A stretch of DNA of 64,000 bases from NCBI GenBank assembly GCA_010909165.1, contig MU008153.1, positions 496,001 through 560,000 on the forward strand. The letters are read 5' to 3'. A program made the translations under genes and the position numbers. Under the pieces are notes generated by a model. It had not been told where the DNA came from. It did not search any database and saw only the letters and a program-made list of their open reading frames with translations. This DNA is from Anthoceros angustus. Lineage: Eukaryota; Plantae; Anthocerotophyta. This document shows, piece by piece, positions 767-52,789 of this stretch (its first letter is position 1; every line of letters starts with the position of its first letter).

Positions 767-1860
767 CAACAACTTTATTTATTCCACCGATGATGGAAGT
801 GCTCTGATTGAACACATATAGAGACAAAATATATACATCTAAACTAAAGAGACAAGACGGTGTAAGATGGAAAAAAGGGAAGGAAAGCTATAAGAGGCAA
901 AACAATTGTAAAGAGTTCAACTAGGTCTGCCGAAAATCAAAAAGCTCAGAGAGACATAGGCCAGTGAGCTTCGTAATATGAAACGAGAAGAATCTACGCA
1001 AGGAAAAACCAGCACACTTAAATAGAAGAGTGTATACAGCGAGCCCGAATAGGAGCATAGACATGGCAATAGAAGAGGAAGTGTGATTTAGATTCAGGGT
1101 CAAGGGAGCAGAGCTTGCAAATACGGGCAGCTTGGGGTGGTGTGGACTTAAGCCAACGGTTGGTCTCGATTCGGAGGTAGTGGGAGCTAACACGGAATTA
1201 ACCGATAAGAGTGCGGAGCTTGAAGGAGAGAGGGAATTGAGGTAACATGGTAGGGGTGGAACCTAGAGGGGATTGACACGAAACTCCTCCTAGTAGAAAC
1301 GGAGTTTGGACATTAGGGAGGGCAAATGAAAGGGGAACCAAGTGAGACGAAGATATCTTAATTTAAGGTCCCGCCGGATGAGGTGGTTGGGAGGGAGATG
1401 AGAAAGGGGAAGGGGGAGAATGGGGAGTTGGCCAAACCGGGAGTCTAAGGGGTGCAAATTTAAGCCGTTTAAGCCAAGCAACTGCTTGGGAGAGCCAAGA
1501 AAAAGAAGCTTGGGAATCAACATTGAGCCGAAGGAAGCGAGAAGACCTGTAGGCAAGGAGATGATAAGCGGCCGGGGAGGGGGGGAAGGGTTAACAATGT
1601 CAAGGAGGAGGAGGCGGTAAAGAAAACAAGAGAGGCAAAAGAGGCCATCAAGTTCAAGGGGTAAGGTAGAAAATTCAGAAAGGAGGATAGGTAAGGGGTC
1701 GAACGCTTACAGGCAATGTGAGCACGGAGAAAGGAGCTTTGTACTTTTTCCACCTTAGCCCAAGAGGAAGAGGATGATGGTAATTGTGGGAGTGAAAATA
1801 GGGTCACCCGACTTTTCTGCATTTAGATATGGCCAAACAATGTGTTGAAGGGTAAACAAT
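767..1860 (-). mobile_element. 5'-truncated non-LTR retrotransposon (LINE) 3' end with AATAAA-(GTT)n tail
   Basis: Reverse strand encodes SSSWAKVEKVQSSFLRAHIACKRSTPY, a post-RT LINE ORF2 region, and ends AATAAATAAAGTTGTTGT. Homologous to the plus-strand copy at 13845-14161 plus 17917-18795. Confidence 0.8.
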
Positions 1861-2061
1861 ACATCGTTTTCTATATACAAATTAAATGCACTTTTTTTAC
1901 ATTAAAATATTTAAATTATATATAAAGAATGATATATAATAAGTACTAAGATTAAAAATAGGGCACTGAGTTATGTTGACACTGAGATTATGTCACAAAT
2001 TAATATTATATTGTAGCCGCCCAATGGTCATCCGTAGCGGCTCTAGCTCAATCGATAGTCA

Positions 2062-2092
2062 AAACATGGTAATTCTGTAAGGAGGTTAATAT
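2062..2092 (+). repeat. Left terminal inverted repeat (31 bp)
   Basis: AAACATGGTAATTCTGTAAGGAGGTTAATAT. CATG at 2065-2068 may be a target duplication rather than part of the TIR. Confidence 0.85.
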
Positions 2093-2259
2093 GCACCATG
2101 GGGGTTTTCTGCCTTTTATTCGGCAATGAGGGTTTCCAATGGGTCTCCATTTAGGGTTTTGAATCGTGTGGTCCAAAAATGCCTCAGAAAATAGGGTGTT
2201 CATCTGCCGTGCACACAAATTTCGTGTATCGATGTAGGAGGCAAAGGGTTTTGATAACC

Positions 2260-5200
2260 CCTCATACATCCATTTGGCTCCATTTCGGACCCGGATGGGA
2301 CGACCGTTTGTGCAGGTGATGATGAAGACCGATGAGCAAAACCCGGCAACTCAGCGCGAAAAACATGGTGCGCGGGTCCTTTTCCATTAAGTACAACTCT
2401 CGCCTGCCGTTAGTACAATGGTCCAGGGTCAATGTCGGGCCCTGCTCGGAAAACACAATTAATGTCGTTCTAGAGCGGCCGACCGGCGCCCTCTTCACTC
2501 CTCGTCCATGGACACCCTTTGACCGTGTGTAATTGTGGCCCCATTGTACACGCGAAGAGAAATAGTGTTCCCCACTTGCTGGGGTGAACCGTAACATGCA
2601 AAAGAAGTCACATCGAGTGAGGATCGGCCTATGGACATACAAACAACGTTCTGGTTTGGTTAACGCTTCGTCTGCAATGCGTCTTGCACATGAACACCAT
2701 CTTCTGTCGATGTCTCGTCGTATGGATTTGTCGCTATGCTTAGGAAGGCTGGTTTCCACGCTGGTCTTTGTAACTGCATAATAATGACAGAACTTGGCGG
2801 AAGACAACGGTTTTCTGGTTAAGTGCGGGCTGGGAAAAATAGCCTTCCACGGACAATAATGAATTTGGAGAATCTATTGAAACTTATTGAGAGGAAGGGA
2901 AGAAAAACGTGTCCACATAAGACAAAACATCTTGGCAGATGTTCATGAACTCCGTCGTCTCGAATTACCATCATCATCGCAAGGCTCGCATCACCACCAC
3001 TATCTTCACTATCTTGGGCCACTTTGGCTAGTCGGTATGAAGCGCAATTCATTTAATTTTAGTCGATCGCCTTCTTGTCCACAGATATAAATGTTTGCGA
3101 GCATTCAAGTTGAAACCATAATATATGATCACGTTTTGTTCACAAAAACCTTTTATGCGTTTTGTGCAAATTAGCTTTCCTCCTTTTTCCCCGATTTTCA
3201 CACTGGGTCCCTTCATGTCGGATTATAAATTCTTCAACATACCTTCCTTCATACGCATCCGTGCTCGGTCATGTACCAATGAGCGACAAAGTGAGGATCC
3301 GGTGCATCTAAGTGAACATCAATGACCCCGCCAATCCAAAACGGCTCAGCCGTGGTGTGGGGACGCAATGAACATGTCTTTCCTTATTTCCGCAATGTCA
3401 CCATTCAACCGCAGTTTCTTGTTCTTGTCTAACAACGGTTTGATATGCACCAAGGTACATATCCGTTGGGGAAGGTCCCTGAGTAAAGCCTCCTCTAGCA
3501 ACGCCTCATCAGGCACGTGGAGAAGCTCTGTTTCTTCAACTTCATCCGAAAACCACTTCCATGCGTCCTGGAGTGCGAGCCCTATATTATTCTCCACAAT
3601 AACGATCTCCTCTTGGTCCACCCAAAATTCTTCCCACCATTTATATTCCTCTGCGGTGACATATGGTCTAAGCGAGAGGCCCTCCTTCAAGTGAGCCACA
3701 CCTCGGTTGGGGATAACCGACGATGTGCCTTTCTTATCACGGCACGAAGGGATGTCACCGCGGTTAAGTCATGGATGGGACAAACTTCAAAAACTCCAAA
3801 CCGGCTTCCGCTTTCCCATTGTGGCGATGTCGAATATTGTTTGCTTCTAATGATCACAAGGCCACGGTCGTTTTCTTCTCTTGTAATTTTGAACTGCCGG
3901 AATGACAGTTGTTCAATTTCGCATCATACTATGCTTGCCCATCCCCTTGTCGAACGGCCAAACATAGGAGCGGAAGTCTGGAACCTCCGTTAATACCTTC
4001 ACCGTGTTGGAGTGTACGCCTCTTTCAAAATTGCCGCCAATGCGGGAGAGTATGAGCTTCCCTGTTTCAAGCTCTTTGAAAACATGAAAACATTTGGTCA
4101 ATTTGATCATGAGTATGTCCAACGAGAAGAAACCCCACCTTTACTTTCTCAAAAGTTCCCATATCCACTAACATGTTCGGATATGCAAAAGAAGTTGATT
4201 CTTGTTCTCCGACAAGTGTTGTCCAATTGCAAGTATAAAACCTTCTAATACTCCTCGTAGTTGTGTATCACATCCTGTATAATGTTGATAGTCAAATTGG
4301 CGTCATTTCTCAAATTTGTAATGCAAGAAGGCCCTCGTTTATACGTGTAGTTGTGAATCATACACCCAACTACGTGGGCGAGATGCGGGACTCCTCATCC
4401 AGTTCTTGACCACCTCAAAAGTGTGGTACCTCGCTTTTCTTGGTCCATCCCATCTATAGATGTAATATGTACTTATGCGGATCTCGTAACTTTTGCTCTG
4501 TGTTTGGCCATCTTCGTCTGCTCGTGCAAAAGACACGACGGCCCAAGCGACCGATATTTCATTACAAAACAAGAACTTCACGAGTCGGTTTCAAAATCCA
4601 TTCTTTGCAAACACTCTAGTCATGCCCTCTCATTTATCATTACACATATACTTCACATGAGGGCGGATTTTGGTGTAGGTGGGAGCCAAGGTCGGTGCTT
4701 ATGGAGTTCCACCCAAGGGTTTCCGTGGTAGGACATAGGGGCGCCGGCCGGCGCCACTCTCTTGTGATATAAGGGGCGCCGGCCGGCGCCACTAGTGTCA
4801 TGACATTGGGTGGGGGCCGTGGCTCCTGTGGAGGAGGAGGAGGAGGAGGAGGAGGAGGGGAGGGTAGTGCAGGCAACTAACCATCCCAGGTCGGACGCCT
4901 CTTGTGATATAAGGGGCGCCGGCGCCACTCTCTTGTGATATAAGGGGCGCCGACCGCTTAACCAAACCTCCATCCAAGAAGGCGCCCAAACCTCCAAGCG
5001 ACGGCACCGACACCTAGGACCAAGACACCACGACAAACCGCAGTAGTTCACACAAAAAGGTTAGAAAGGACATGCGGAGGAACAAGAGTGCCCAGACCTT
5101 GATCGACCTTCCGTGTTGAGTTCCGTATAGTTGTCTTCAATCGCAGCGAGCATGTCGAGAACCGGTTTGACTTTGGGATCTTCACTCTGTAGTTGCATTT

Positions 5201-6600
5201 CCATAGCTTTAAGAACCACGCGTAGGTGACATATCCGAGCCCGACCTTTCGCACTCTCGTTTGTATAGCAACCATATTTCTAATTTTGTATGCGTGTCGG
5301 AAGATTGAAAACCTCCACATTTGGGAGCCTCTCACCATGTACATAAAAGTCTCCATCCAAGCTATGGCCCTAGCGCATGGAGCTGTATGGGTTTGTTCGA
5401 AACCATCCACGGTGAGTTCGAAGAACTCTAGCCTTCAACTCCTCATACCGGATGTGTCCCACACAATAAACCCTTAAAGCCTTGAGACAACATCGTGTCG
5501 GAACACTCCCATAACATGAGTGACAACTTTTCCTTTATCATTGGTCCCTGTCGCGATGGACTAGAGGCGAAGGAATGTCCCGCTTCGCACATTCTTATGA
5601 ATCTATACCGCTCGAAATCTTTCTTTCGTCAATTTACAAGCACATCGATTGCAACAAGGTTTCCGAGTCAGCTGTTACAATGTCCACTTCACTCTTCCTC
5701 AACACGCTGCGCCCGTCTTGACATAACGCAGACGAGTCCTTCGACGTCTGCAATGTCTCGCTCAAAGGTTTGGTGAAACGATCTTTGCACATCATCCTCC
5801 GGAGGTGATTGGAAGTCGCTCGATGGGACCTCTATCGGACCTCTAGCACCTCGGGACCAGGTTTGTTCTGCCTTCGCATACCCATCGCCATGAACAAGCC
5901 ACGGCGGGCAATCGTGCGAACATCAGGCATCCCTTCAACCCCAACTCTCCTCGCTAGAGGGCTGCCGTCAAAATGGCTGCGTACAAGTTCAGGTTTCTTG
6001 GCATCATCGGAACATCATGCGGCATACTTGGTGAAGACAACTCCCGACGTCGGCGTCTATCCCCTGCACAAGTGATATCCAATACTGACTTCCCACAGTA
6101 TGCTATAGCGGACTCTTCCAAGCCCCTTAACACACTAACCTTGCGGAGGATGGCGAGGCAGAGGTGGCGGAGGGTTCAAAAGATCAAGCCTCCTCGCCCT
6201 TTTCTGGGAGTCCGCTACAGGCCCCAAGTATCGGGAGGGTTCTTCTACATAAGCCGATGCCTGCGTGCAAATGTGCATTTGCCGGGTTAACAGCAGCTGG
6301 TGATAGCACAAATGAATCAGACATGACACAGTCGGGTGCACTTTCCACTCACGTCCTCCATATCGTCTGTGTGTGTCGCGCGCAACATTGCCGGTAGTCG
6401 AAGTCGTCGACAAGTCCTGCTTGGTAGACTCCTTGCAAACAGAAATGGTTGGTAAGTGTGGTTTGCGTCGAGCGCCGACTTAGTACCCACGCCTACGGCA
6501 CGCGACTTCATTGCACATAACGGCGAGGAAATCCAATGAGGCAGCGGATATCGCACCGCCACGGATAAGAATAACTTACCGCGAATCGATGGATAAGTCA
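2260..6600 (-). CDS. DDE-type transposase (Sola-like/DUF7869-like), multi-exon, frameshifted in this assembly; ends approximate
   Basis: Reverse-strand motifs in the expected order: WFLKLWKCNYRVKIPKSNRFSTCSLC (~5140-5230), SIDGMD(Q/E) (4440-4460), LYLQLDNTCR..ENKN (~4195-4240), FLLVGHTHDQIDQMFS (~4088-4135), EEYKWWEEFW (~3620-3650). Probable intron at about 4600-5097 (donor GATCAAG|GTACC in unit 2). Confidence 0.75.
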
Positions 6601-6729
6601 CAGTGTCATAAATACATGCATAGGAGAATAAGGTCCACTTAACTACCAGCCTTTCACACGACATCAGGGTTTCTAACTTTGGTTAACGTGGTGAGCGGTA
6701 ACCCTAATCTGGTCCAGGGGTTAAGAGTC

Positions 6730-9700
6730 CCTTATGGTAACGGTGTTCCACTCAACCTGCCTGCGCACTGGTAACGCCCACACCATGAGAGAGGCCTCCA
6801 TCGGTGTGTGGCGGGCGTGTGTGAAGGAGGGACCTACGGTGTGCGCCTTTGCAAAGAGCGTGTTCCGTGTCAACGGTGCACAAGGCATCCTGCGGCGAGA
6901 ACTCCACAATTTCCATTCAAGCCCAATTTGTGAGTGATGCAACTTTGTTTTCAGGTAGCTCAATTCGGGCGGGCCTGTGCAGGTGAACGATGGCAAGCGG
7001 ACGACGGAGCAAGAAGGATTTGGCGGCGCCGGTGACCTCCTCCCAAGTAAGAAATCCAGGCGGGGAGTAGCGGGCGGCTAGTGCGGAGGGACTTGGGAAA
7101 GGCAGCGACCATCGCGTGATGCGATGGAGGTGGTGAGCAAGCCAAGGGTGGGCATGCATCGGGCAAGCGAAATCCGCTGGCGGCGTCTGCGAAGGCCGAC
7201 AACGGTGGAAAGAGGGGAGCTGGAGTGGAGAAGTCACAAAAGCCTCGGCGCTGTGCCGCCATTCCTTCGCCTTCACCTACGAGGAGACTGTGATCATTCG
7301 GGCTCGAATGCTCGGATGGATCCTGTCAATGCTTGAGAAAGATTGGATGGTGACACGGGATGCGAGCGAGGATGAGAACGCTCGGACTCCACTGTTGAAA
7401 TTGTGGATCATGGGTTATGGGAGCATTGCCTAACCAAAGAGCGAGGGCTGGATGGGTAGTATGGGCGACCCTGGACATGGACGAGAAGAACCCGGTGTTC
7501 ACGTTGTTTTGCACAACAAGGCCTCAGGAGTTTGACGCAGTGATTCAAGACCCTCAAATGTATAGGGCGTATGAGCTCAGCGTCCTTGGGTTTCATGCTA
7601 AGAAATGTGGTCCTCCTGAGCTTGTCGAGGTATTTCGGGAAGCAATGCGGCAACCGACTGTAAGCAGATATGCCATTGACATGTAAATTTTGTTTTGTTC
7701 GGTTGTGTCACCGCTTGCCCTCCGATTTGCATCATGTTTGCTTTCGCAGCCACCCTGTAGGAAGAGCTCTTATCGATCACAGTGGAAAGGTGTCGGATCT
7801 TGTTGTAGCACACAGTGCGTATTGTCTATGAGGAGGCGAGAGAGCAGCACAGAGGATGATGCAGATAGTGAAGATGCGATAGTGAGACCATCCGACGAGG
7901 ATGATGGCCCGATCCTGTGCCGGGTCATTCAGATGGAGAAGGGTCAGCGACCAAGACGAGGATAGGGATGCAGAGGACATCATGAACTTTGCGACCTTGT
8001 TCCTACCGTCCGCATCGATGCGGATGACAATCGGGCGGCCGGCCGGCCGGCCGGCGCCCAGCGGATGGGGAAGACGATGACCCCAAACCCAAACCGGTTT
8101 GTCCGGGCCTGCTGGGGAGATGGACTAGGCGGCCGGCGGCGCCCCTGCCATTCACGCCCAAGAAGGAGGAGGCGGCCGGCCGGCCGGCGCCTGTGAGCGG
8201 AAGAGGAGCCAGGCGATGTGGTGGAGCGAGGTGGAAGCGAAGAGAGCACCTACGGATGTCTCGCCGCTGGACGAGCAAATGGCGATGTGGCGCAGTGGGA
8301 AGAAGAAGTCAAGAGAGATGGAGGAAAAGGGGACCATCCGGAAAACATTGCCACTGCTCATGTTCGACGAGGAAAAGGCTGGAGGATGCTATCGAGATGC
8401 AGACCCTTTGACACGAATTCGGGACTCGGCTTACTCCAAGAAGGTGGTTCGTGAAACAAGATTAGTGAAGTGGAGAATTTGAAACCAAAGATCCCATATT
8501 ACACCGGATGCGCAGATAAGGAGAGTGGACGAGGCATGGGCAAATTATTTGGCTCGTGTAATATCGAAGGGAAGGATTGAGGAGGGCGTGTTGCCTCTCC
8601 TTTGCATGATCGACCCGACGAGTGTGACAACCTCAAGTTGGACCGGAAAAGGTTCGAGAAGAAATATGTTATGGGCGTTCTTGGTGGGAACCATACCTTT
8701 GCAGCCATGAAACATTTGGCGATATATCTCGAGGAAAACACGCTTCCAATATGTGGAAGCTCATGTCGATTGTAAATGCGAGCATCGGCAATGCACACAA
8801 TACGATGTCAGACAAAAGGAAGAAGATGTCCTTCATTGAGCAGGTCAGGTACTTGAGGGACGAACTACTTATTGCCGGCGAGATGATGTCCAGATGACCA
8901 TGAATTGGAAATTCAACCTATACCGTGTATTGGGCTTGATTGAGGACGACGGAGGTCGGAAGACGATGTTTACAAGCGAATAAGGTGGACAATCGGACCC
9001 ACATCTTATGCAAAGCAGAGGGAAGGTTTGGGACAACGTGGATCGAATATTTTCAAAATGGGAGGCTGGAGAATTGCCGGAGCAGAAAAAACATGTTCCT
9101 GCCGGAACAAGTAAGAAGGGCAAAGGCAAACGGAAGGTACAAGAGGAGGCTCAGGTTGTTGACACTGTTACGTGAAGCCGAAGGATATGCTAGCAAAGCC
9201 GTGGAAATCGTTCCAAGGGATTCCAGCTGGAGAGTGCGGTCAGCGGATACTCATCAGCGCGACCGAGAAGGTGTTGACAGGTATTATCGACCTAAAAGGT
9301 ATGGATGAGGAGATTACCTTACGGAAGAAGTTTCATGTTATACAAGTGGCTATGGTAAAACACTTGGGCTGCTCATCATTCGAAGAGGTTAGGCTGGAAT
9401 ATCCTTTGCATTCGACCGAAATGATAGCTCGGTTCAGACGGCATTGGGAAGGTGTGCCATACTACCCATCGTTTTCTAATTCTCTCATATGTCGTCTGTT
9501 ACAAACCCTAACGTTCTTGCGGCGCCGGTGGAGGCCACTTCCACATGTGATGTGGGGACCGAGTTGCACGGCCACCGGCGCCAGATCCACTCCATAGAAC
9601 GAGAGGGCGCCGGCCGGCGCCTCACCCCTTGAGATCTACGGGTGCATAATGTTTCACCGCACACTGTATGCACTTACTCGTTTTGCCTGCAAGAATTGAA

Positions 9701-10960
9701 GGATATAGACAACTTGCGAAAATGCCGGAGGACTTTAAGAATTTCATTTTCGAGATCAATAATTGGAAGAGTTTGGAAGACGAGCAATGACGGGCATGTG
9801 ATCTTCATGAAGGGCTGCACATTTTACCGCTCCTGATGAGAAGGAGGTTCATTACCAAGTGGAGAAGCGAGATATTCTGGAGATGCGGGGCTACCTTCGG
9901 GTGAGTTAGTCATGGATGTGCCCAGAGGCTTTGATATTGGGCCTATGGACAAACGGATGGATGCGACTATGTTGAGTACATTTTCAGCAGTTTCATGAGA
10001 AAACTACAAGCGAACTTCCGCATGATTGTCATGCATGGAGTGGAGGAAGCCCACACAGAATCGGCGCGCAGTGGTGTAAGAAGGGTGGCACAGTGTCTTT
10101 CGTGTGGGATAAAACTAACATGAGCAATGATAGGGGCGGATTTGAAGCGATGGAGTATGTGACCGCTTGATGGGGCTTGAAAGATGGGTGTTCAAAGGAT
10201 CGAGCTCGATGATGCCGAATGCCATGCATGGCACTTTTAACAATGGGAGGTCCGTCATAGGCCATGACATGGTAAAGAAGGTGTACTTGTCCCATGACAA
10301 GTTGGTGGTATGCCCATACCAAAGGCCTCTTGGGCTGATGAAATTGATCAAGACCTTCTCAAAAGAAGGAGGCGGGTGGTGGACGCATGCTCGGTGGCAC
10401 AACCAGCAGCCTTGCTGTGGAAGAATCAGACGCCATCGGCGGACTTACGGTGCCGGATACATCCCCAGATCCATCCACGGATCGAGGTTCTCCGGATCAA
10501 GAAGAGCTTACCTTGAGCCCCATCGCAGGCCCTTCGCAGCCTGGGCAAAGGAGGTTTGTATAAGTGAAAAGGATTGTTCAAAGGCCCAAGTTGTTTCTTT
10601 GAGTGCCGGAGGATGAAGAGAGCGAATTGGTGTTGAGGAAGGACAACGCTGGATACCATATGGCAACCTCCCACGTCGTCGGCAGGTCCAAGCGCGGAGG
10701 TTAACAACGGCGACAACGCTTTGGGTGAGAATGACAGACGAAGAACTGGAGCGATACGAAACCTAGCTGTAGTTTTAGATTCTGCTTCGGGGCCCGTTGA
10801 GACCCGAATAGCCCGCATGAGTAACCGGATCCAATGTATTAGGATTCCGACATAAACTTCATTATGCCATGTGTCTATCGGTGCCATTTTGCGAAGTGCA
10901 CATTTAAAACGTCCCTCTTCCATTATGGCCATCTGTGCGCGCCAGCCGCGCTGCACTGTC
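6730..10960 (+). CDS. ParB/Srx-like domain plus beta-class N4C/N6A DNA amino-methyltransferase fusion, multi-exon, frameshifted; ends approximate
   Basis: QIRRVDEAWANYLARVISKGRIEEGVLPLLCMID...KYVMGVLGGNHTFAAMKHL (8511-8720) is ParB-like. Then LVMDVP(G/R)GF (D at 9915), FVWDKTN..GG..EY (10099-10160), CPYQRPLGLM(M)KLIKTFSKEGG.VVDACSG(S)GT (10311-10400). This is the motif IV ... X-I order of beta-class MTases. Candidate introns at 7660-7749 (GTAAGC..TTTCGCAG) and ~9450-9700. Confidence 0.72.
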
Positions 10961-11097
10961 GCTACCGTGTGTATGCCTCAATTGTGTTGTTCATGACTTA
11001 GTCGGGGGCCAAGAATGGTCCATTGTCGAGATGATGGCGTGATTTAGATACCGAGTGATTTTCGTCAAAGGGGTTACGCAACAGGAAGGGGGTTCGT

Positions 11098-11128
11098 ATA
11101 TAAACCTCCTTACGTAATTACCATGTTT
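11098..11128 (-). repeat. Right terminal inverted repeat (31 bp)
   Basis: ATATAAACCTCCTTACGTAATTACCATGTTT, with CATG at 11122-11125. Confidence 0.85.
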
Positions 11129-11224
11129 CAAATTTATTTATCTCCACCCAAGAGGATGTAAATAAAGTTGTTGTTGTAACTCGTTCACTATTTACCTGCC
11201 CCATGTGGTTTCCTCGCTACGTGT

Positions 11225-17916: not shown

Positions 17917-18795
17917 TTTACCTATCCTCCTTCTGAATTTTCTGCCTTACCCCTTGAACTTGATGGCCTCTTTTGCCTCCCTTGTTTTCTTTACCGCCTC
18001 CTCCTCCTTGACATTGTTAACCCTTCCCCCTCCTCCCCTACCATCTTCTTGCCTCTCTTTTGCTTCCTTGACGGTGTTGATTCCCAAGCTTCTTTTCTTG
18101 GCTCTCCCAGCGGTTTGGCTTAAGCTTAAATTTGCACCTTAGGCTCCGGTTTGGCCAACTCCCCATTCTCCCCTTCCCTTTCTCATCTCCCTCCCAACCA
18201 CCTCATCCGGGCGGGGACCTTAAATTAAGATATCTTCGTCTCACTTGGTTCCCCTTTCATTTGCCCCTCCCTAATGTCCAAACTCCGTTTCTACTAGGAG
18301 GAGTTTCGTGTCAATCCCCTCTAGGTTCCCTGCCCCTACCATGTTACCTCAATTCCCTCTCTCCTTCAAGCTCCGCACTCTTATCGGTTAATTCCGTGTT
18401 AGCTCCACTACCTCAGATCGAGACCAAGCTTGGCTTAAGTCCACACCACCCCAAGCCGTTTTTGCAAGCTCTGCTCCCTTGACCACAGATCTAAATCACA
18501 CTTCCTCTATTGCCATGTCTATGCTCCTATTCGGGCTCGCTACACTCTTCTATTTAAGTGTCTGGTTTTTCCTTGCGTAGATTCTTCTCGTTTCACGAGC
18601 TCACCGGCCTATGTCTCTGAGCTTTTTGATTTTGGACCTAGTTGGACTCTTTACAATTGTTTTGCCTCTTATAGCTTTCCTTCCTTTTTCCATCTTACAC
18701 CGTCTTGTCTCTTTAGTTTAGATGTATATATTTTGTCTCTATATGTGTTCAATCGAGCATTTCCATCCTCGGTGGAATAAATAAAGTTGTTGGCG
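17917..18795 (+). mobile_element. LINE 3' end resuming after the insertion, with AATAAA-(GTT)n tail
   Basis: Reverse complement of 767-1700; ends GGAATAAATAAAGTTGTTG. Confidence 0.82.
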
Positions 18796-18797
18796 TT

Positions 18798-19265
18798 GTT
18801 GGTAGGCGCAAAATCATCAACCCTACAGGCTAGGCCAAATGGACACACATTTATAAGAACACCGTGATTAAGCATTGAACTTGGATCGGTACTTAGATGG
18901 GGTGCCTAAAGGAGTGGATGCCCTTGGTGCAAGTAGCTTAGGCACACCATGGTACAAAGTTATTAGTACCAAGTCCCATGACAAACCCGTCCTTAGTGGA
19001 CTTAAATAAAATTCTTCTTCTTCTTCTTCTCTCTCGGGTTCATGGGTCTGGGCTATCCAAGGCGACGGCGGTGGATCTATGTATCAAGACATAATTTTTT
19101 CTTACATTCACTGCATCCTTTGAAGACACGAAGTTCATTTGACATCCAGGCGTAATCGATCACACATCGTTTTAAGCGCTTGGGTCAAGCGTCTCCTTGG
19201 ATGTGCAAATGGGGCATGGTGCCTCTCCTTTCGTGTCGAGCTACGGGATAAGCTTGAACTGGCGG
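18798..19265 (+). mobile_element. Inverted copy of the small tRNA-like element, interrupted at 18825-19030
   Basis: TTGGTAGGCGCAAAATCATCAACCCT|insert|CTCGGGTTCA...GAGCTACGGGATAAGCTTGAACTGG is the reverse complement of 483-760. Unit-2 copy at ~43899-44365. Confidence 0.55.
18825..19030 (+). mobile_element. ~205 bp 5'-truncated retroposon of a second family with AAATAAAA-(TTC)n tail
   Basis: Absent from the 483-760 copy. Encodes LDRYLDGVP, resembling the extreme C-terminus of some LINE ORF2s. Ends AAATAAAATTCTTCTTCTTCTTC. Unit-2 copy at ~43923-44130. Confidence 0.6.
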
Positions 19266-20850
19266 TGCGGGCTTGCACAAGCAAGCGACATGGTCTAATG
19301 TATGTAAGTCATAATGTGCTTTGGTGCACGACAAATGGTTGTAAACCATAGTGTTAACGCAGTACACGCGCTCACAAAAACCTATCTAAGGACGTCGGCA
19401 TGCCCGTGCTTTATGGAGGGAGTATAAGAACATATGGTGCTAGCATATTAGCGCGTTCATTTATATATATTATTTGCACGTCGTAAAGTTTTGTTGTCTC
19501 CTAGAGTTGGTAAAGTGGTCAAAAACTTGGATGAAGAGTGATAGGATGCCAATTCGAGATGCAAATTGTAGTTTTTATACTAGATGAGTTTCTTTTAGGG
19601 TGTCGGCCTTTCAAGTAAAAGCCAAGGGCAGAGCGCAGACATGTTGGCGCCCACACACCAGTACTCCCAGGCCTTCTACCAGAAAACACATGAAGATTCC
19701 ATATCTCGACAGCTAGTACCTACTACCTCATATAAAAAATTGCCTAAAATCGTAATTTAGTTATTGTGTAGTTTTTGAAAGCGACTTCAATTCTACCGGA
19801 AGAAACTTTGTATATTCAGCCGCTTAAAATATTATCATGTTCTCACTTATAGTAAGCTTTGAGGCGATAAGCGAGATAAGATATTGCTTCACATTTCATT
19901 GGAGATCACATGCAATCTTGATGCATTGAACTTTTTAAATTTCCCTATGTATGTGACAGCATATACCTATCCTTATCAAATACCTAAAACTTTAAGAATA
20001 CTTGGCCTAATAAAGATCTATGAAGTTTCACCAAACAAAAGATACAAAGGATGCATTATTTATTACTTCGTTTTCCTTCCTCCCCAACAACTCGTGATTT
20101 ACCACTTAGTTTTTCGCATTTACACTGCCAATCAATTGTTGTATCCGTTCTCTTTTTAACTGTGTTCGGATTCCTCCAAATCTAACCAACCAAGAAACTC
20201 TATTTATACTCTTAATATAAAACTTCCAATCCAAGAATTACTTTTTCAAACTTGGACTCACATTGGAGCAAAGGTTTTAATCGCATGTCTAATCAAATAA
20301 GCCGAGGAAAACAACATATCGCCTTCAATATTCGCATGGCATGTGAAAATCACACCGAAAGAGCATCATAGGTAGGTGGCCACAATGTCGCAATGAACCA
20401 AAGAGATAGCATGATGCGTTACAAGCTCGGGGCCGTTTAGTTAGAGAGATACCGTTCGGCCATTCTCAAAATCAGCTTCATAGCCCGCACAAAGCCGAAG
20501 TTCTATGAGGAATCCTCCTTGAGGCGGATCCCATTGCCATTGTACCATCTCCATCGTGTCCAAGTGAACTAGGCGGAATTGTTGGAGTGCTAGTTTCAAA
20601 TGGACAAAGACCTCCTTTAGGCCCTAGACACGCATTTAGGCCCCATACTTGAACCGAACGGTTACCATAGCTTTATCGAGCTGGTGGAGTTGCTTGTAAC
20701 AGTGTATCTTTCTGGTGATTCTCATGAATCTCAAATGTCCTAATTGCACTGAGTTCACGTGAATTATGGTTGCTTGAGTGCATGGACTTTCTATTCCATG
20801 GCATAGCTCCTTCAACTAGCGATCTCGTGATCACTCCACACCTTTTTAAT

Positions 20851-20978
20851 ATGTACCTTTTGCCTTACGCATACATATCTCATTTTCTTAAAATGTACCT
20901 TCTTCCTTCATGCATACATATCTCATTTTCTTAAAATGTACCTTTTGCCTTCTGACATACATATCTCATTTCTTAAAA
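20851..20978 (+). repeat. 3 x ~43 bp tandem repeat
   Basis: ATGTACCTTTTGCCTTACGCATACATATCTCATTTTCTTAAA-like units start at 20851, 20893 and 20936. Also at ~46012-46142. Confidence 0.9.
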
Positions 20979-21184
20979 TCATGTTCTTAGCAAATTTGCT
21001 TTGTGTTCAACATCTTCCCATGGTTTTGTTTATACTTATCTATGATTTATGCAATACTGCAAGCATTTTATTTTATAAATTATCGAAATTAAAAATAATA
21101 CTCTATGTTTTTGGAAATTAAAACATCCAAGTCAGCGGACGGAATTGTCTTTTCTACTATTGTCTGTTGTCCGTTGACCGAAGG

Positions 21185-21932: not shown

Positions 21933-24367
21933 ATGGAGAATTTGGAGGAAACCATGAGGACTCTGCTGAGGATGGGGATGGCCGGTGGCTCTAATCGGCG
22001 TGGCCAGACAGACAGGGAGAGGATGCTTGCAGATTTCAGAGCTGCCAGGGAGTTCCGCAACAGGCCAGAGCATCGAAGCATGCACCAGGCGAAGTTTTCC
22101 GTGATGGATGATCCGCCTCCCCCGTCGAGAGCTTCGCTGTCCAGCCTCCGCCCCATCCTGATCAGGTAGCTTTGATGGGATGGTCTGGTTTCTTTGCATG
22201 CGAGCCTGGAGCTGGAGATTGTTTGCTTGATTGATTGATGGATGCATGCAAGCGATTGGGCTTGCTGTTGCTTGCGCGTGGTGCAGTGAGCTGACTGTGG
22301 GGACGAGGCACCGGGGGCGGGTGCTGTATGGCAAGCTGATCGAGGACGCGTTCCGGTTGGCTGCTGTGATGACCTTGATGGAGGACGAGACTGGCGAGGT
22401 CACCATTCTGACGGTGTATCATGCGCTCAAGTCGAATGCTCCTGAGCGGATGGTGGCCAAGCGGTTTCCCAAGGGGCGGAAGATTGCGGTGAAGGAACCG
22501 TATTTCAAGGTGGCCATGGATGGACGTCTGGCTGTGAGAGTGGATAATTCCGATGATTTTGTGCTCTTGGAAGAGGACGTTGTGCATGTGGCTCCGTCCG
22601 AAGGGCAGGGCAACCAGCCAAGTACGAGAGAGGGGGGAGATGGGCGTGCGAGCTCTAGTGGAGAGGGTGTGTTGAAATCGGTGGAGGAGCTGCGTGAGGA
22701 GGGAAGGACGTGTTTTAAAGCGGGGGAGTGGGGGAGGGCTGTTGAGGTGTATAGCAGGCTGGTTTCTGTGATAGAGGGGAGGGAGGAAGGGGATCGTGAG
22801 AGGTCGAGGGAGGACTATGTCATTGCCTACTCTAACAGGGCGGAGGCCTGGCTGCGGCTGGAGAAGTATGAGGAGGCTCTGGGAGATGCTGCCAAGGCTT
22901 TGGAGCGGGATGGTGGGCATGTGAAGAGCATTGCGAGGAAAGTGAGGGCTCTGTGTGCGTTGGAGATTTTCCATGAGGCGGTGCTGTTGTTGCAACAGGT
23001 GATGAGGGATGGAAGGGTGGATGGTGCCACTCGGACGGAGTTGCAGGGGCTGCTCAGAGGTGCAGAGGCTGGGGACAAGCAGAGCAGGTTGGGGAAGTAT
23101 GATCTCAACGAGTTTTATGTTGGTAGTGGGCAGTGGCTCCTCCGAAGTGCAGAGATTTTGTGGGGCCTGTAGGGATCAGGCTGGTCCAGCAAGGGATGGG
23201 TCGAAGAGGCGGGGCTTGTTTGTGACCAGTAGGGTGAAGCCCGGGATCTGCTTCTTGTGAGTAATCCGCTTGCTGTGGCAAAAGGCGGTGAGGAGCAGGC
23301 GGGGCTTTGTAAGAGGTATCAGGATGCCAGCTTGTGTCGTGATCGACGAGAACTTGATAACGGAGGTGACGGAAATTTGCAGGAGGTCCCTCGCCGTCTG
23401 AAGCAGTTGTACTCGCTCTACGATGGCACGGAAGGCTCCCAGGCTGAGGTGCCTCCTATGTCGTTGTTCTTGCCACCTGCAGATTCAAGCAAAGTGAAAC
23501 CGCAAAGTGCTCCTGAGGAAGTGGTGGATGTTGGCCGCATTCGGAGGATCAAGACCGTGAACGCCTTCTTGGGACCGGACCCTGGAGATGCTTTCACAAG
23601 CGAGTGGTCTCAGATGACTTCACCCGCAGGCTTGTGGGTGCTGCCTTCTTTCATCAACCACTCCTGTCTGCCCAACACTCACATCTCGTTTGTGGGATAT
23701 GCGATGTTCTTACGAGCCACCCACGACATCCAAAGAGGGAGGAGCTCACCATATCCTACGGCGACTTGGAACAGCCTTTGGAGGAACGGAGGGCGTTTCT
23801 CAAAGCCCATTCAGGATTCGAGTGCAGGTGCCCTAGGTGCACAATCGAGCAGGAACTTTTCAGAGCTTCCCAGCGTTGATCACACTCACACAGCTGTTTT
23901 CTGCCCTTCCACCCAAGGACGAGTCTTATGGTGAGGAGGCTACTAAGAGGCTATCCGCTGCAGGTGCCAGACTTGCTGAACGTTTGGAGCAAATCCTTGA
24001 TAAGTTGCCAGCAGGCGATGCCCACAAAAAGGACTGGGTCAGGCATTCGTATTTCAGGGTCTACATGTGCGTGGCCTCGGAGCATCTGAGGCGGACATTG
24101 AAGACTGATGAATGGGACAGTTGGGCGGACCATATGTACGCTCGGTTAAGCACGATGCTCCGTATCGAGCCCACAGAGGAACTCCTTGCACAAGCTAGCG
24201 GTGCTGTTCGTATTATGGAGGACAGGTGCGAAGAGTATCTATGGAAGTGGAAGGCTAAGTGGACTCGCCTGCTGAAGCAGATCTGCACCGCCATGTATGG
24301 GCCTATTAGCGAGGAGGCCAGGAAAGCTCTTGTTTACAGATACTCCCGGACGGCTCTTGCGCTCTAG
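21933..24367 (+). CDS. TPR plus SET domain protein (putative lysine methyltransferase), 2 exons (21933-22165, 22287-24367), frameshifted in this assembly
   Basis: A GT-AG intron at 22166-22286 joins PILI-S-ELTVGTRHRGRVL in frame. TPR helices (EELREEGRTCFKAGEWGRAVEVYSR, AYSNRAEAWLRLEKYEEALGDAAKAL). SET motifs RGLFVT..VKPGDLLLV and GLWVLPSFINHSCLPN..ATHDIQRGEELTISY, post-SET FECRCPRC. Stop TAG at 24365-24367. Confidence 0.88.
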
Positions 24368-26945: not shown

Positions 26946-27339
26946 ATACATCGTTTTCTATATACAAATTAAATGCACTTTTTACATTAAAATATTTAAA
27001 TTATATATAAAGAATGATATATAATAAGTACTAAGATTAAAAATAGGGCATCGAGTTATGTTGACACCTAGATTATGTCACAAATTAAATTATTATATTG
27101 TAGCCGCCAATGGTCATCCGTAGCGGCTCTAGCTCAATCGATAGTCAAAACATGGTAATTACCTTGAGGTTAATATGCACCATGGGGGTTTTCTGCCTTT
27201 TATTCGGCAATGAGGGTTTCAATGGGTCTCCATTTAGGGTTTTGAATCGTGTGGTCCAAAATGCCTCGAAATAGGGTGTTCATCTGCCGTGCACACAAAT
27301 TTCGTGTATCGATGTAGGAGGCAAAGGGTTTTGATAACC

Positions 27340-30300
27340 CCTCATACATCCATTTGGCTCCATTTCGGACCGGATGGGACACCGTTTGTCGGTGATGATG
27401 AAGACCGATGAGCAAAACCGCAACTCGCGAAAAACATGGTGCGCGGGTCCTTTTCCATTAAGTACAACTCTCGCCGTTAGTACAATGGTCGAGGGTCAAT
27501 GTCGGCCCTCGCTCGGAAAACACAATCTAATGCTCAAGCGGTGGCCGACCGGCCCTCTTCACTCCGTCCATGGACACCCTTTGACCGTGTGTGGCCCCCA
27601 TTGTACACGCGGAGAGAAATAGTGTTCCCCACTTTGGGGTGAACCGTAACATGCAAAGAAGTCATACATCGAGGCGTCGTGAGGGGGCCTATGGACATAC
27701 AAACAACGCTTGGTTTGGTTAACGCTTAAATGCGCTTGCACATGAACACCATCTTCCATCGATGTCTCGTCGTATGGATTTGTCGCTATGCTTAGGAAGG
27801 CTGGTTTCCTTTGTCTTTGTAATCGCATAATAATGACAACTTGGCGGAAGACGGTTTTCGTTAAGTGCGGTGGGAAAAATAGCCTTCCACGGACAATAAT
27901 TTGGAGAATCTATTGAAACTTATTGAGAGGAAGGGAAGAAAAACGTGTCCACATAAGACAAAACATCTTGGCGGATGTTCATGAACTCCAGTCGTCTTGA
28001 ATTGGTCATCATCGCAAGGCTCGCATCACCACCACTATCTTCACTATCTTCGGGCCACTTTGGCTGGTATATGAAGCCGCAATTCATTTAATTTTAGTCC
28101 GATCGCCTTCTTGTCCACAGATATAAATGTTTGCGAGCATTCAAGTTGAAACCATAATATATGATCGTTTGTTCACAAAACCTTTTATGCGTTTTGTGCA
28201 AATTAGCTTTCCTCCTTTTTCCTTTCCACACACGGGTCCCTTCATGTCGGATTATAAATTCTTCAACATACCTTCCTTCATACGCATGCTCGGTCATGTA
28301 CCAATGAACGACAAAGTGAGGATCCGTGCATCTAAGTGAACATCAATGACCCGCCAATCCAGCTGTTGATTCATCGGTGGTGGGGCGAACATGTCTTTCC
28401 TTATTTCCGAAATGTCACCATTCAACCGCATGCGTTCTTGTTCTTGTCTAACAACGGTTTGATATGCACCAAGGTACATATCCGTTGGGGAAGGTCCCCA
28501 GTAAAGCCTCCTCTAGCAACGCCTCATCGTGCACGTGAAGAACCTCTGTTTCTTCAACTCCGCGAAAACCACTTCCATGCGTCTTGGAGTGCGAGCCCTA
28601 TATTATTCTCCACAATATGATCTCCTCTTGGTCCACCCAAAATTCTTCCCACCATTTATATTCCTCTGCGGTGACATATGGTCTAAGCGCGAGAGGCCCT
28701 CCTTCAAGTGAGCCACACCTCGGTTGGGGATAACCGACGATGTGCCTTTCTTATCACGGCACGAAGGGATGTCACCCGTCGTTACGTGGATGGGACAAAC
28801 TTCAAAACTCCAAACCGCTTCCGCTTCCCATTGTGGCGATGTCGAATATTGTTTGCTTCTAATGCATCACAAGGCCACTCGAGTTTTTCTTCTCTTGTAA
28901 TTTTGAACTGCCGGAATGACAGGTTGTTCAATTTCGCACCGCAGCCTCCGTATGTGGCGTCCATCCCCACGTGTGCCAAACATAGGAGCGGAAGTCCTGG
29001 AACCTCCGTTAATACCTTCACCTCGTGTTGGAGTGTACGCCTCTTTCAAAATTGCCGCCAATGCGGGAGAGTATGAGCTTCGTGTTTCAAGCTCTTTGAA
29101 AACATGAAAACATTTGGTCAATTTGATCATGAGTATGTCCAACGAGAAGAAACCCCACCTTTACTTTCTCAAAAGTTCCCATATCCACTAACATGTTCGG
29201 ATATGCAAAGAAGTTGATTCTTGTTCTCCGACAAGTGTTGTCCAATTGCAAGTATAAAACCTTAATACTCCTCGTAGTTGTGTATCACATCCCGTATGTT
29301 GATAGTCAAATTGGCGTCATTTCTCAAATTTGCGTAATGCAAGAAGGCCCTCGCTTTTATAGTGTAGTTGAATCATACACCCAACTACGTGGGCGAGATG
29401 CGGGACTCCTCATCCAGTTCTTGACCTCAAAAGTGTGGTACCTCGGTTTTCTTCGTCCATCCCATCTATAGACGATATGTACTTATGCGGATCTGAACTT
29501 TTGCTCCCTGTGTTTGGCCATCTTCGTTCCTCGTGCGGGCGCACACGATGTTCGGTAGCGACTGATAACATTACAAAACAAGAACTTCAGAGTCGGTTTC
29601 AAAATCCATTCTTTGCAAACACTCTAGTCATGCCCTCTCATTTATCATTACACATATACTTCACATGAGGGCCGGATTTTGGTGTAGGTGGGAGCCAAGG
29701 TCGGTACTTATGGAGTTCCACCCAAGGGTTTCCGTAGCAGGACAGGGGCGCCGGCCACCCCTCACACTAACAAGGGTGGTGGCCGGCGCCACTGGGCTGT
29801 CATGACATTGGGTGGGGCCGGCCCTGTGGAGGAGGAGGAGGCGGGGAGGGGAGGGAGTAGTACAACTAACCATCCGGTCGGAACTGCCCCTCAGTGAAGC
29901 AGAGGGGCGGCTGCGGCGCCACTCTTGTGATATAAGGGGCGCCGGCCGACCAAACCTCCATCCAAGAAGGCGCCCAAACCTCCAAGCGACGGCACCGACC
30001 TAGGACCAAACGGCCACGACAAACCGGTGGTTCACACAAAAAGGTTAGAAAGGACATGCGGAGGAACAAGAGTGCCCGGTACCTTGATCGACCTTCATGT
30101 TGAGTTCCGTATAGTTGTCTTCAATCCTGCACAAAGCGAGCATGTCGAGAACCGGTTTGACTTTGGGATCTTCACTCTGTAGTTGCATTTCCATAGCTTT
30201 AAGAACCAGCGTAGGTGACATATCCGAGCCCGACCTTCGCACTCTCGTTTGTATAGCAACCATATTTCTAATTTTGTGTACGCGTCGGGAAGATTGAAAA

Positions 30301-31550
30301 CCTCCACATTTGGGAGCCTCTCACCATGTACATAAAAATCCATCCAAGCTATGGCCCCTAGCGCATGAGAGGCTGTATGGGGTTTGTTGAAACCATCCAC
30401 GGTGAGTTCAAGAACTCTAGCCTTCAACTCCTCATACCGGATGTGTCCCACACAATAAACCCTTCCGAAAGCCTTGAGACAACATCGTCGGAACACTCCC
30501 ATAACATGAGTGACAACTTTTCCTTTATCATTGGTCCCTGTCGCGATGGACTAGAGGCGAAGGAATGTCTCACCTCTTATGCACATTCTTATGAATCTAT
30601 ACCGCCTCACAAATCTTTCTTTCGTCAATTTCGCACACATCCGATTGCAACAAGGTTTCCTAGTCAGTCCGACAATGTCCACTTCACTCTTCCTCAACGA
30701 CCGCCCGTCTTGACGACATACGCGAGAGTCCTTTGGCGTCTGCAATGTCTCGCTCAAAGGTTTCGGGTGAAACGATCTTTGCACATCATCCTCCGGAGGT
30801 GATTGGAAGTCTCGCTTCTGGTGGGACCTCTATCGGACGACCGTCTAGCTCCTCGGGACCAGGTATGTTCTGCCTACCCATACCCATCGCCATGAACAAG
30901 CCACGGCGGGCAATCATGCGAACATCAGGCGTCCCTTCAACCCCAACTCTCCTCGCTGGAGGGCTGCCGTCTATGGCTGCATACAAGTTCAGATTTCTTG
31001 GCGTCATCGGAACACCATGCGGCATACTTGGCGAAGACAATTCCGACGTCTTTCCCGCACAAGTGACATCCACTCGACTTCCCACAATGTGCTATAACGG
31101 ACTCTTCACAAGCCCCTTAACACACTAACCTTGCGGAGGATGGCGAGGCAGGTGGCGGAGGGTTCAAAAGATCAAGCCTCCTCGCCCTTTTAAGTCCTCT
31201 GAGGCCTCAAGTATCGGGAGGTTCTTCTACATAAGCCGATGCCTGCGTGCAAATGTGCATTTGCCGGGTTAAGTGATAGCACAAATGAATCGAACATGAC
31301 ACGGTGTGCACTTTCCACTCCCTCCATATCTGTGTGTCGCGCAACATTGCGGTAGTCGTCGACAAGTCCGCTTGGTAGACTCCTTGCAAACAAATGGTTG
31401 GTAAGTGTGGTTTGCGTCGGCCTTAGTACCCACGCCTACGCCGCGACTTCATTGCACATAACGGCGAGGAAATCCAATGAGGCGGAGGCGGATATCGTCC
31501 GCCACGGATAAGAATAAACGACCGCCGCCGCGATGGATAAGTCACGGTCA
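27340..31550 (-). CDS. DDE-type transposase, unit 2 (frameshifted; ends approximate)
   Basis: ORF 30095..30502 contains WFLKLWKCNYRVKIPKSNRFSTCSLCAGLK. DGMDE at ~29451-29465. GHTHDQIDQMFS at ~29105-29140. Confidence 0.75.
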
Positions 31551-31669
31551 TAAATACATGCATAGGAGAATAAGGTCCACTTAACTACCACCTTTCACAC
31601 GACATCGGGGTTTCTAACTTTGGTTAACGTGGTGAGCGGTAACCTAATCTGGTCCAGGTTAAGAGTCCC

Positions 31670-34600: not shown

Positions 34601-35800
34601 AGAGTTTGGAAGACGAGCAGCGTGGTATACAGATCTTCATGAAGGGCTGCACATTTTCTGTTCTGTGGTGAAGGAGGTTCATTACCAAGTGGAGGCGAGA
34701 TATTTTTAGATGCGGGGCTACCTTGGTGAGGAGGTACACCACATTAGTCATGGATGTGCCCGGAGGCTTTGATATTGGGCCTATGGACAAACGGATGGAT
34801 GCCACTATGTTGAGTAGTTTTCAACAGTTTTCATGAGAAAACTGGCGAAGACTTCGCATGATTGTCATGCATGGAGTGGAGGAAGCCCACGATGCAGGAA
34901 TCGATGCGGTGGTGTAAGAAGGGTGGCTGGTGTCTTTCGTGTGGGATAAAACTAACATGAGCAATGATAGGGGCGGTTGAAACATGGAGTATGTGACCGG
35001 ATGGGGCTTGAAGATGGGTGTTCAAAGGATCGAGCTCCGATGCAGATGCCATGCATGGCACTTTTAACAATGGGAGGTCCGTCATACATGACCTGGTAAA
35101 AAGCGGTGTACTTGTCCCATGACAAGTTGGTGGTATGCCCATACCAAAGGCCTCTTGGGCTGATGATGAAATTGATCAAGACCTTCTCAAAAGAAGGAGG
35201 CGGGTGGTGGACGCATGCTCGGAGTGGCACAACGGATAGCGGCCTTGCTGCATGGAAGCGCCGCCATCGAGCGGACTTACGGTGTCTTTGGATACATCCC
35301 CAGCGCATCCACGGATCAGGTTCTCCGGATCTGAAGAAGAGCTTACCTTGAGCCCCATCGCAGGCCCTTCGATTACAGGCAAAGGAGGTTTGTATAAGTG
35401 AAAAGGATTGTTCAAAGGCCCAAGTTGTTTCTTTGAGTGCGGAGGATGAAGACCGAGCAGGCGGTGTTGGAGGAAGGACGATAACGCTGGATACCATATG
35501 GCAACCTCCCACGTCGTCGGCGTCCAAGCGGAGGTTAACAACGGCGACAACGCTTTGGGTGAGAATAGCGGTTTGTGAAGAAGAGCTGGGCGTATACGAA
35601 ACCTAGCGTAGTTTTAGATTCCTTACATTCAGGCCCGATTGAGACCAGAATAGCCCGCAGTAACGGATCCAATGTATTAGGATTCAGGACATAAACTTCA
35701 TTATGCCATGTGTCTATCGGTGCCATTTTGCGAAGTGCACATTTAAAACGTCCTCTTCCATCATGGCTTCATGTGCGCGCCAAGCCAGCACCTGTGTCGT
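31670..35800 (+). CDS. ParB-like plus amino-MTase fusion, unit 2 (frameshifted)
   Basis: GGNHT at 33546. YTTLVMDVPGGF at 34735-34770. VWDK at ~34938. ORF 35106..35351 reads CPYQRPLGLMMKLIKTFSKEGG...SGTT. Confidence 0.72.
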
Positions 35801-36084
35801 GTGTATGCCTCAATTGTGTTGTTCATGACTTAGTCGGGGGCCAAGAATGGTCCATTGTCGAGAGGCGTGATGGCTTTGCGTGATTTAGATACCGAGTGAT
35901 TTTCGTCAAAGGGGTTCTGCAACACCGGAAGGGGGTTCGTATATAAACCTCCTTACAGAATTACCATGTTTCAAATTTATTTATCTCCACCCAAGAGGAT
36001 GTAAATAAAGTTGTTGTTGTAGCTCAGTCGGTACCCTATTTAATGACGCCCTGTCTCATGGTTTCCTCGCTACCTGGTGTGAGA

Positions 36085-52395: not shown

Positions 52396-52789
52396 ACAAT
52401 ACATCGTTTTCTATATACAAATTAAATGCACTTTTTTACATTAAAATATTTAAATTATATATAAAGAATGATATATAATAAGTACTAAGATTAAAAATAG
52501 GGCCGAGTTATGTTGACACCGAGATTATGTCACAAATTAATATTATATTGTAGCCAATGGTCATCCGTAGCGGCTCTAGCTCAATCGATAGTCAAAACAT
52601 GGTAATTACAGGAGGTTAATATGCACCATGGGGTTTTCTTTTTTATTCGGCAATGAGGGTTTCCAATGGGTCTCCATTTAGGGTTTTGAATCGTGTGGTC
52701 CAAAATGCCTCGGAAAAATAGGGTGTTCATCTGTGCACACAAATTTCGTGTATCGATGTAGGAGGCAAAGGGTTTTGATAACCCCTCAT

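Follow-up and report, generated by a model that had tools for sequence, protein, structure and literature searches.

Some DNA transposons carry a DNA-methyltransferase-like gene of their own. Such accessory systems have been recognised as a class only recently, with reports from brown, green and red algae. The closest described example is Sola1-1_Ec32 of Ectocarpus, a 21.5-kb element with 282-bp terminal inverted repeats (TIRs), AACCG-CGGTT termini and a 4-bp target-site duplication (TSD) biased to end in A (Genome Biol 2025, PMC12477816). Its transposase has the blocks MMDGANQ, VQVDNTVAENKN and VGHTHIQIDQIFSCF, and opposite the transposase strand it encodes a 1104-aa accessory protein. This combines a ParB-like domain with a methyltransferase domain whose predicted product is N4-methylcytosine (4mC) or N6-methyladenine (6mA); the authors suggest that the element modifies itself (PMC12477816). 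Here we analyse an element of ~9.07 kb within 64,000 nt of contig MU008153.1 from Anthoceros angustus (assembly GCA_010909165.1, positions 496,001 to 560,000; this whole stretch is termed the window). We consider it highly probable that this is a decayed Sola1-type element with a methyltransferase-derived accessory gene, and that it represents a single insertion that was later tandemly duplicated. An earlier note on this DNA, made from the sequence alone, had left aside whether the family was already catalogued; the layout, a Sola1 transposon with a ParB-methyltransferase gene, is described in the 2025 Ectocarpus study.

Three further systems are comparable in part. Marchantia DN4MT1a/b (bioRxiv 10.1101/2021.02.12.428880) and bdelloid N4CMT (PMC8885841) likewise have prokaryote-type N4/N6 folds in eukaryotic genomes. 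However, these are host genes with a catalytic TSPPY motif and demonstrated 4mC function, whereas the window gene is transposon-borne, broken and without the tetrapeptide. The methyltransferase domain of the DIRS1 retrotransposon (Iyer, Zhang & Aravind 2016, PMC4738411) is also transposon-borne, methyltransferase-derived and predicted to be catalytically inactive, but it belongs to a PCIF1-derived group, sits in another class of element and is embedded in a polyprotein. Lastly, phage fusions of ParB_N and N6_N4_Mtase (Streptococcus phage phi-SsuFJNP8_rum QGJ85541, our L009) follow the beta-class order, an HPxQKP-like motif and then D.F.GSGTT at the C-terminus, which is where the window module aligns. 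The fusions keep DPPY and a recognisable ParB_N, whereas the N-terminus of the window gene has no match to a profile built from ten such N-termini.

Element ends and a single insertion

The element is enclosed by an inverted repeat at 2062-2092 and 11098-11128, in which 28 of 31 positions match in a repeat search of the window; we estimate that ~5e-5 such pairs would be expected by chance in 64 kb. This is the 31-bp TIR of the earlier note, and it is better read one base inward, as a 30-nt TIR (AACATGG...CCATGTT, 27/30 matching) followed by a TSD. The left TIR, AACATGGTAATTCTGTAAGGAGGTTAATAT, occupies 2063-2092 (+) and the right TIR 11098-11127 (-). Read base by base, the left junction is ...GATAG TCAA AACATGGTAATT... 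and the right junction is ...AATTACCATGTT TCAA ATTTATT..., giving a perfect 4-bp direct repeat, TCAA, at 2059-2062 and 11128-11131 (chance 1/256 at fixed register). The same direct reading rules out a TSD of 8-9 bp or of TA/TTAA.

Depth is given here as the summed depth of Illumina-derived contigs from run X1. At the left end it rises from ~13 (1856-2039) to 140-300 (2040-2223), which shows this end to border a multi-copy family. It stands at 370 over the transposase core (4064-4247) and at 30-125 over the exons of the accessory gene.

A second, ~1.2-kb inverted repeat (481-1694 and 17918-19263, 91% identity) surrounds the element and ~7 kb more. It was rejected as the true ends, as the 30-nt TIR comes with a TSD and a depth step of its own. 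Contig depth over the arm of the larger repeat is 22-132, and this repeat could represent a further big TIR element or else a fold-back structure.

Taken together, the TIR with its 4-bp TSD, the RNase-H-like fold predicted for the transposase (below) and the depth rise at the left end indicate a real two-gene TIR transposon, presumably of the cut-and-paste type, much as the earlier note proposed. Its ends fit Sola1 (4-bp TSD; AAC...GTT termini), and we file it there with the caveat that the assignment rests on a comparison of motifs and ends with one published element. With Sola1-1_Ec32 it shares a 4-bp TSD ending in A, the AAC..GTT termini and an opposite-strand gene with an amino-methyltransferase domain. 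In contrast to the 21.5 kb and 282-bp TIRs of the Ectocarpus element, it measures 9.07 kb, has 30-nt TIRs and resides in a seedless land plant.

The window as a whole consists of a ~25.1-25.5-kb unit repeated in tandem, with unit starts at 1, 25118 and 50598. The array holds at least 2.5 units and passes both window ends, and hence is longer than 64 kb. Unit 2 contains the insertion at 27149-35970 (88% blastn identity including gaps, with TIRs and flanks identical in register), and unit 3 contains it at 52596-64000, where it exceeds the window end, again with identical flanks in register. The genes had been described as repeated in all three units and are indeed present in each, but all three have the same flanks in register and the same TCAA. 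Therefore, the units are no evidence of three transposition events: they are one insertion multiplied by a ~25-kb tandem segmental duplication, not independent insertions.

The transposase gene

Between the TIRs lie two divergent genes, as previously noted: a transposase gene on the minus strand (from ~5560 to ~2265) and an accessory gene on the plus strand (from ~8480 to ~10520). The transposase gene (about 2265-5560, -) was delimited from open reading frame (ORF) lists and by tblastn with two metagenomic relatives, L029 and L049. A Cys-rich block at the N-terminus is followed by the catalytic core and a further block at the C-terminus, and the gene is interrupted by stops and frameshifts. 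The predicted catalytic core at 4085-4526 (-) contains IDGMDQEK, LYLQLDNTCRR and VGHTHDQIDQMFSCF; it was placed by Pfam PF25273 (DUF7869, E 1e-13 for the piece 4070-4267) and by alignment to L029 and L049, which also reveals three in-frame stops in unit 1. The N-terminal block at 5051-5434 (-), WFLKLWKCNYRVKIPKSNRFSTC, is 41% identical to the L029 transposase, and its F.RIW..EFP...C..C pattern is common to the window transposase and Sola1-1_Ec32. Compared by eye, with no computed alignment, the two transposases also share MDGxxQ, QxDNTxxENKN and VGHTHxQIDQxFSCF blocks.

A homologous-protein search with one transposase piece gave no match. The core peptide recovered 49 loci encoding relatives, 53-76% identical, from JGI metagenome contigs. 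Several of these have long uninterrupted ORFs, with DUF7869 matches of up to 1e-50; in L049, for example, a frame of 973 aa is free of stops and matches DUF7869 at 1e-50. An AlphaFold (AF2) model of L049, built with 17 homologues, reached a predicted local confidence (pLDDT) of 70-90 in the core. All of its top Foldseek matches in the Protein Data Bank (PDB) are RNase-H-like (PIWI, RNase HI, the UvrC C-terminal domain and a retroviral integrase core), albeit weak at E 9e-4 to 2e-2.

Between the N-terminal block and the core, a GC-rich, repeat-laden stretch at 4640-5050, found by repeat search, is probably an intron or an insertion. It contains two copies of a 16-nt perfect palindrome, GGCGCCGGCCGGCGCC, which occurs seven times at <=2 mismatches (4740, 4775, 9606, 55254, 55444, 59936 and 63077) against 0.01 expected by chance. 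All seven sites fall within the element, where the sequence is GC-rich and hypervariable, and the palindrome could represent either a short palindromic insertion or a candidate protein-binding site. The spacer between the divergent genes (5561-8479) has a part conserved in the family at 7330-7655, with contig depth of 20-100 at 7273-7666. Pfam found no match in the spacer, and its ORFs are without a match in the metagenome loci.

The accessory gene

The accessory gene (about 8480-10520, +), defined by an alignment of the three units and their consensus, runs from an N-terminal region through a linker to a C-terminal part that is methyltransferase-like. A putative intron is placed at about 9487-9688. 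The gene is broken, with frame changes throughout in every unit. A column-majority consensus of the three units regains a 264-aa ORF, and many lesions are hence private to single units. Unit 3 also has a 626-bp internal tandem triplication over the 5′ part of the gene (about 60592-62240), not present in units 1 and 2.

Pfam gave no match to any family for 27 stop-free pieces of the gene from all units, and no stop-free window piece reaches the gathering score of PF01555 N6_N4_Mtase (26.7 bits), which the relative on L029 exceeds at 35.1 bits. A frame-corrected peptide, by contrast with these uncorrected pieces, does match a methyltransferase profile. The profile drew on a diverse set of 17 enzymes of the beta class, namely E. 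coli YhdJ, four YhdJ relatives and twelve enzymes from annotated phage records; Pfam verified two of the 17 as N6_N4_Mtase, one with ParB_N. The query was a 262-aa peptide in which stop-free pieces were joined, an X marking every break. It scored 19.1 bits with hmmsearch (E 3.7e-8 at Z=1, a one-sequence search) and 95.4% probability with hhalign (E 1.7e-8, 197 colinear columns), where the observed score of 60.3 compares with a maximum of 26.7 among 100 shuffles. The C-terminal 74 residues alone gave 96.1% (E 3.6e-9), whereas the N-terminal 188 residues alone scored 15.2, within the shuffle range. Therefore, only CPYQRP...KEGG, VVDACS, SGTT and IAALLHG are demonstrably methyltransferase-like.

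This module, CPYQRPLGLMKLIKTFSKEGG / VVDACS (off frame) / SGTT / IAALLHG, lies at 10275-10470 (+) and has the joint support of hmmsearch, hhalign and tblastn. It is 43% identical to the Pfam N6_N4_Mtase fragment of L029. A tblastn search with that Pfam-certified fragment had its top three matches on the predicted segment, in unit 2 (E 0.007), unit 1 (E 0.081) and unit 3 (E 0.37), and an unbiased search of the profile against 2526 six-frame window pieces gave 35100-35348 as its best match (E 0.23). Upstream, the region where motifs IV-VIII are expected (9689-10274, +; LVMDVP(R/G)GF, FVWDKTN) is colinear by eye and without statistical support. Full-length hhalign places LVMDVPGG on DLIxtDPPY, and the expected (D/S/N)PP(Y/F/W) site of motif IV reads DVPG in units 2 and 3 or DVPR in unit 1. 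Thus, of the N6_N4 methyltransferase gene seen in the earlier note, the C-terminal module holds, whereas motif IV and the N-terminal half have no statistical support. As judged by these profile comparisons, we have shown homology of the last ~60 residues of the predicted accessory protein to beta-class N6_N4 amino-methyltransferases.

Other searches added little. An HMM made from YhdJ only gave just 5 bits and was superseded by the diverse 17-sequence HMM. A PDB sequence search with two pieces returned nothing useful, tblastn of two pieces against phages returned chance matches only, and a homologous-protein search with one methyltransferase piece found no match. A check for expression was likewise negative: the accessory gene is not contained in the one RNA run examined.

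The N-terminal region at 8500-8772 (+; IRRVDEAW..VLGGNHTFAAMKHL) had been called ParB-like, and here our results part from that reading. Pfam has no match there at E<=10, and a phmmer search of the 78-aa piece against 1.84 billion representatives yielded nothing but four repeat proteins, all spurious. Compared by hhalign with ten N-termini of phage ParB or ParB-methyltransferase proteins, the region had a probability of 0.2%, ESM Atlas gave low scores to unrelated TRD families, and an AF2 model of the piece was uninformative (pLDDT 50). Moreover, the by-eye counterpart of the ParB GxxR box in VLGGNHTFAAMKHL reads GGNHT, without an Arg. A ParB_N or ParB-Srx (PF02195) assignment is not supported by these comparisons. 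The locus matches the Ectocarpus layout in having an opposite-strand gene with a methyltransferase module inside the TIRs, with the ParB part not detected. In contrast to Sola1-1_Ec32, the window copy is broken, without a detectable ParB and without DPPY, the accessory proteins having been compared by description only.

Loss of motif I and decay of the copy

The HPxQKP-like motif and the motif I that follows it (CPYQRPLGLM..KEGG x VVDACS x SGTT) are readable only across two frameshifts. The peptide strings quoted in the earlier note are all present, but its VVDACSG(S)GTT is not continuous in any unit, as in 3/3 units neither CPYQRP..KEGG nor SGTT shares the frame of VVDACS. The two frameshifts compensate each other, and the continuous frame reads KEGGGWWTHARSGTT, with GWWTHAR in place of the S-adenosylmethionine (SAM)-binding VVDACSG.

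The assembly itself is prone to indels. Flank contigs of run X1 differ from it by 0-4 substitutions but 1-4 gaps per 170-416 nt, and frameshifts therefore require independent support. At 470-2074, near-identical Illumina contigs differ almost only by 1-nt gaps, which indicates uncorrected long-read indel errors. Could the decay be mostly assembly error, the locus then holding three nearly intact and possibly functional copies? Over 9.6 kb, a blastn comparison of unit 1 with its unit 2 counterpart has 507 gap openings to 329 mismatches, and this excess, together with the indel-only differences of the flank contigs and the 264-aa ORF restored by the consensus, would fit such an account. However, an Illumina contig of depth 56 (10239-10394 with the loose end AGTGGCACAACGG) reads identically to the assembly at both motif-I frameshift sites, and therefore these two are not long-read artefacts. 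Moreover, substitution identity among the three units is only 92-94% and the transposase core has in-frame stops. We regard assembly error as an improbable explanation of the decay, and prefer that of a copy that is truly decayed.

The SAM-binding loop is thus lost in this lineage of copies. With neither DPPY nor motif I, the accessory protein of the lineage would be non-catalytic. Both genes are interrupted by stops and frameshifts and so, together with the missing DPPY/SPPY and the lost motif I, this copy looks unable to move by itself or to methylate DNA.

The suggestion that the element marks its own DNA with 4mC or 6mA is thus unlikely for this copy, given the motif-I frameshifts, also present in the Illumina contig, and the stops in both genes. 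It could be retained for the family, with an accessory protein that actively writes 4mC/6mA on its own element for end protection, control of transposition or evasion of silencing, and the present copy as a relic. The ancestral frame VVDACS.SGTT would make a good motif I beside the HPxQKP-like CPYQRP, L029 has an intact DLCCGTGST above the Pfam threshold, and self-modification is what the Ectocarpus authors suggest (PMC12477816). Against this, there is no (D/S)PP(Y/F), its position being occupied by DVP(G/R)GF, and the N-terminal half as a whole does not stand out from shuffled sequence. The motif-I frameshifts are seen even in the deeply covered Illumina contig, and the one RNA run lacks the gene. 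We consider an active writer unlikely. Most likely, the accessory protein of the family is a methyltransferase-derived factor that would target DNA or chromatin.

Recurrence of the gene pair

An independent example of the pairing comes from L029 (Ga0066793_10030818), a metagenome contig of 2982 nt. It has a DUF7869 transposase ORF at 2-2017 (+, E 9e-50), 72% identical to the window in the core, and an N6_N4_Mtase ORF at 2981-2493 (-, Pfam E 1.8e-8), convergent with the transposase and 476 nt away. Its methyltransferase module, NPYQKP..DLCCGTGST..AALL, corresponds to that of the window. In contrast to the window, where the genes are divergent, both L029 genes appear as long uninterrupted ORFs, facing each other. 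The contig is cut, with the N-terminus of the methyltransferase and the element ends lying outside it. The methyltransferase ORF has an acidic tail at its end, and the contig is a good starting point for finding intact family members.

Alternatively, the methyltransferase-like gene might be a chance passenger and no regular component of the transposon: a host or foreign gene that was captured or nested, or one simply caught between chance inverted repeats. The window shows a single insertion event, a methyltransferase is absent from most of the long metagenome contigs that encode a related transposase, and the gene orientation differs between the window and L029, all of which would fit a passenger. 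However, L029 again pairs both gene types, the pairing is published for the Ectocarpus Sola1 (PMC12477816), and the accessory-gene exons have a depth of 30-125 compared to ~3 in the right flank. We find a chance passenger very improbable, the least probable of the explanations weighed here. Rather, L029 provides independent evidence suggesting that Sola1-like transposases and this type of methyltransferase travel together. Given the differing orientation in L029 and the long contigs that lack it, the methyltransferase gene is an accessory of some lineages and not a core part.

Other features of the window

Within the duplicated unit, ORFs at 22231-23931 (+), with equivalents in unit 2, match Pfam TPR_2 (6e-8) and SET (2e-5). 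They look like a protein-methyltransferase-like host gene duplicated together with the transposon. A short repeat of extremely high copy number lies at 200-567; its summed depth in run X1 is 1,800-9,500, and joints and loose ends are numerous there. Tandem repeats of 43 bp form an array at 20800-21021 and another at 45961-46182, one in each unit.

Conclusions

In summary, we propose that a ~9.07-kb Sola1-type DDD cut-and-paste transposon inserted once at a TCAA site, and that a later ~25-kb tandem segmental duplication copied this insertion with its neighbours. In intact members, as may be expected from the family, the AACATGG... ends would be recognised by a transposase with an RNase-H fold, which would cut the element out and insert it anew, duplicating 4 bp of the target. 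The C-terminal end of the accessory gene descends, as its homology shows, from a prokaryote-type beta-class (N6_N4) DNA amino-methyltransferase, in a lineage of copies that is without the DPPY/SPPY tetrapeptide and lost motif I through the two compensating frameshifts. Several observations weigh against this account. At the right end and in the right flank contig depth is only ~3, with no step. The Sola1 filing leans on a single published element, and no methyltransferase is seen in the other long contigs (8-20 kb) that encode a related transposase. The methyltransferase evidence comes from a frame-corrected peptide that we assembled ourselves, while the unbiased matches on uncorrected pieces are weak (E 0.007-0.37 with the L029 fragment and E 0.23 with the profile). 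Moreover, part of the frameshifts may be artefacts of the indel-prone assembly. We nevertheless hold the account of a decayed, once-inserted and later duplicated Sola1-type element to be highly probable.

This copy offers little mechanistic insight, since it is broken, has no catalytic tetrapeptide and owes its threefold presence to segmental duplication. Its useful outputs are the exact ends (AACATGG...; TSD TCAA), the motif-I double frameshift shared by the units and the independent metagenomic example of the pairing. Occurrence in a land-plant genome widens the host range of the family, and the family is material for asking whether such elements modify their own DNA or use the protein for non-catalytic DNA binding. 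More speculatively, and we think this unlikely, seedless land plants may harbour a Sola1 lineage with a putative pseudoenzyme that gave up the DPPY loop and reads or binds DNA or SAM on behalf of the transposon, or rare intact copies at other sites of this genome may still write 4mC/6mA on the element. In either case, land plants would have an epigenetic module carried by a transposon, from which host enzymes such as DN4MT1 might have come.

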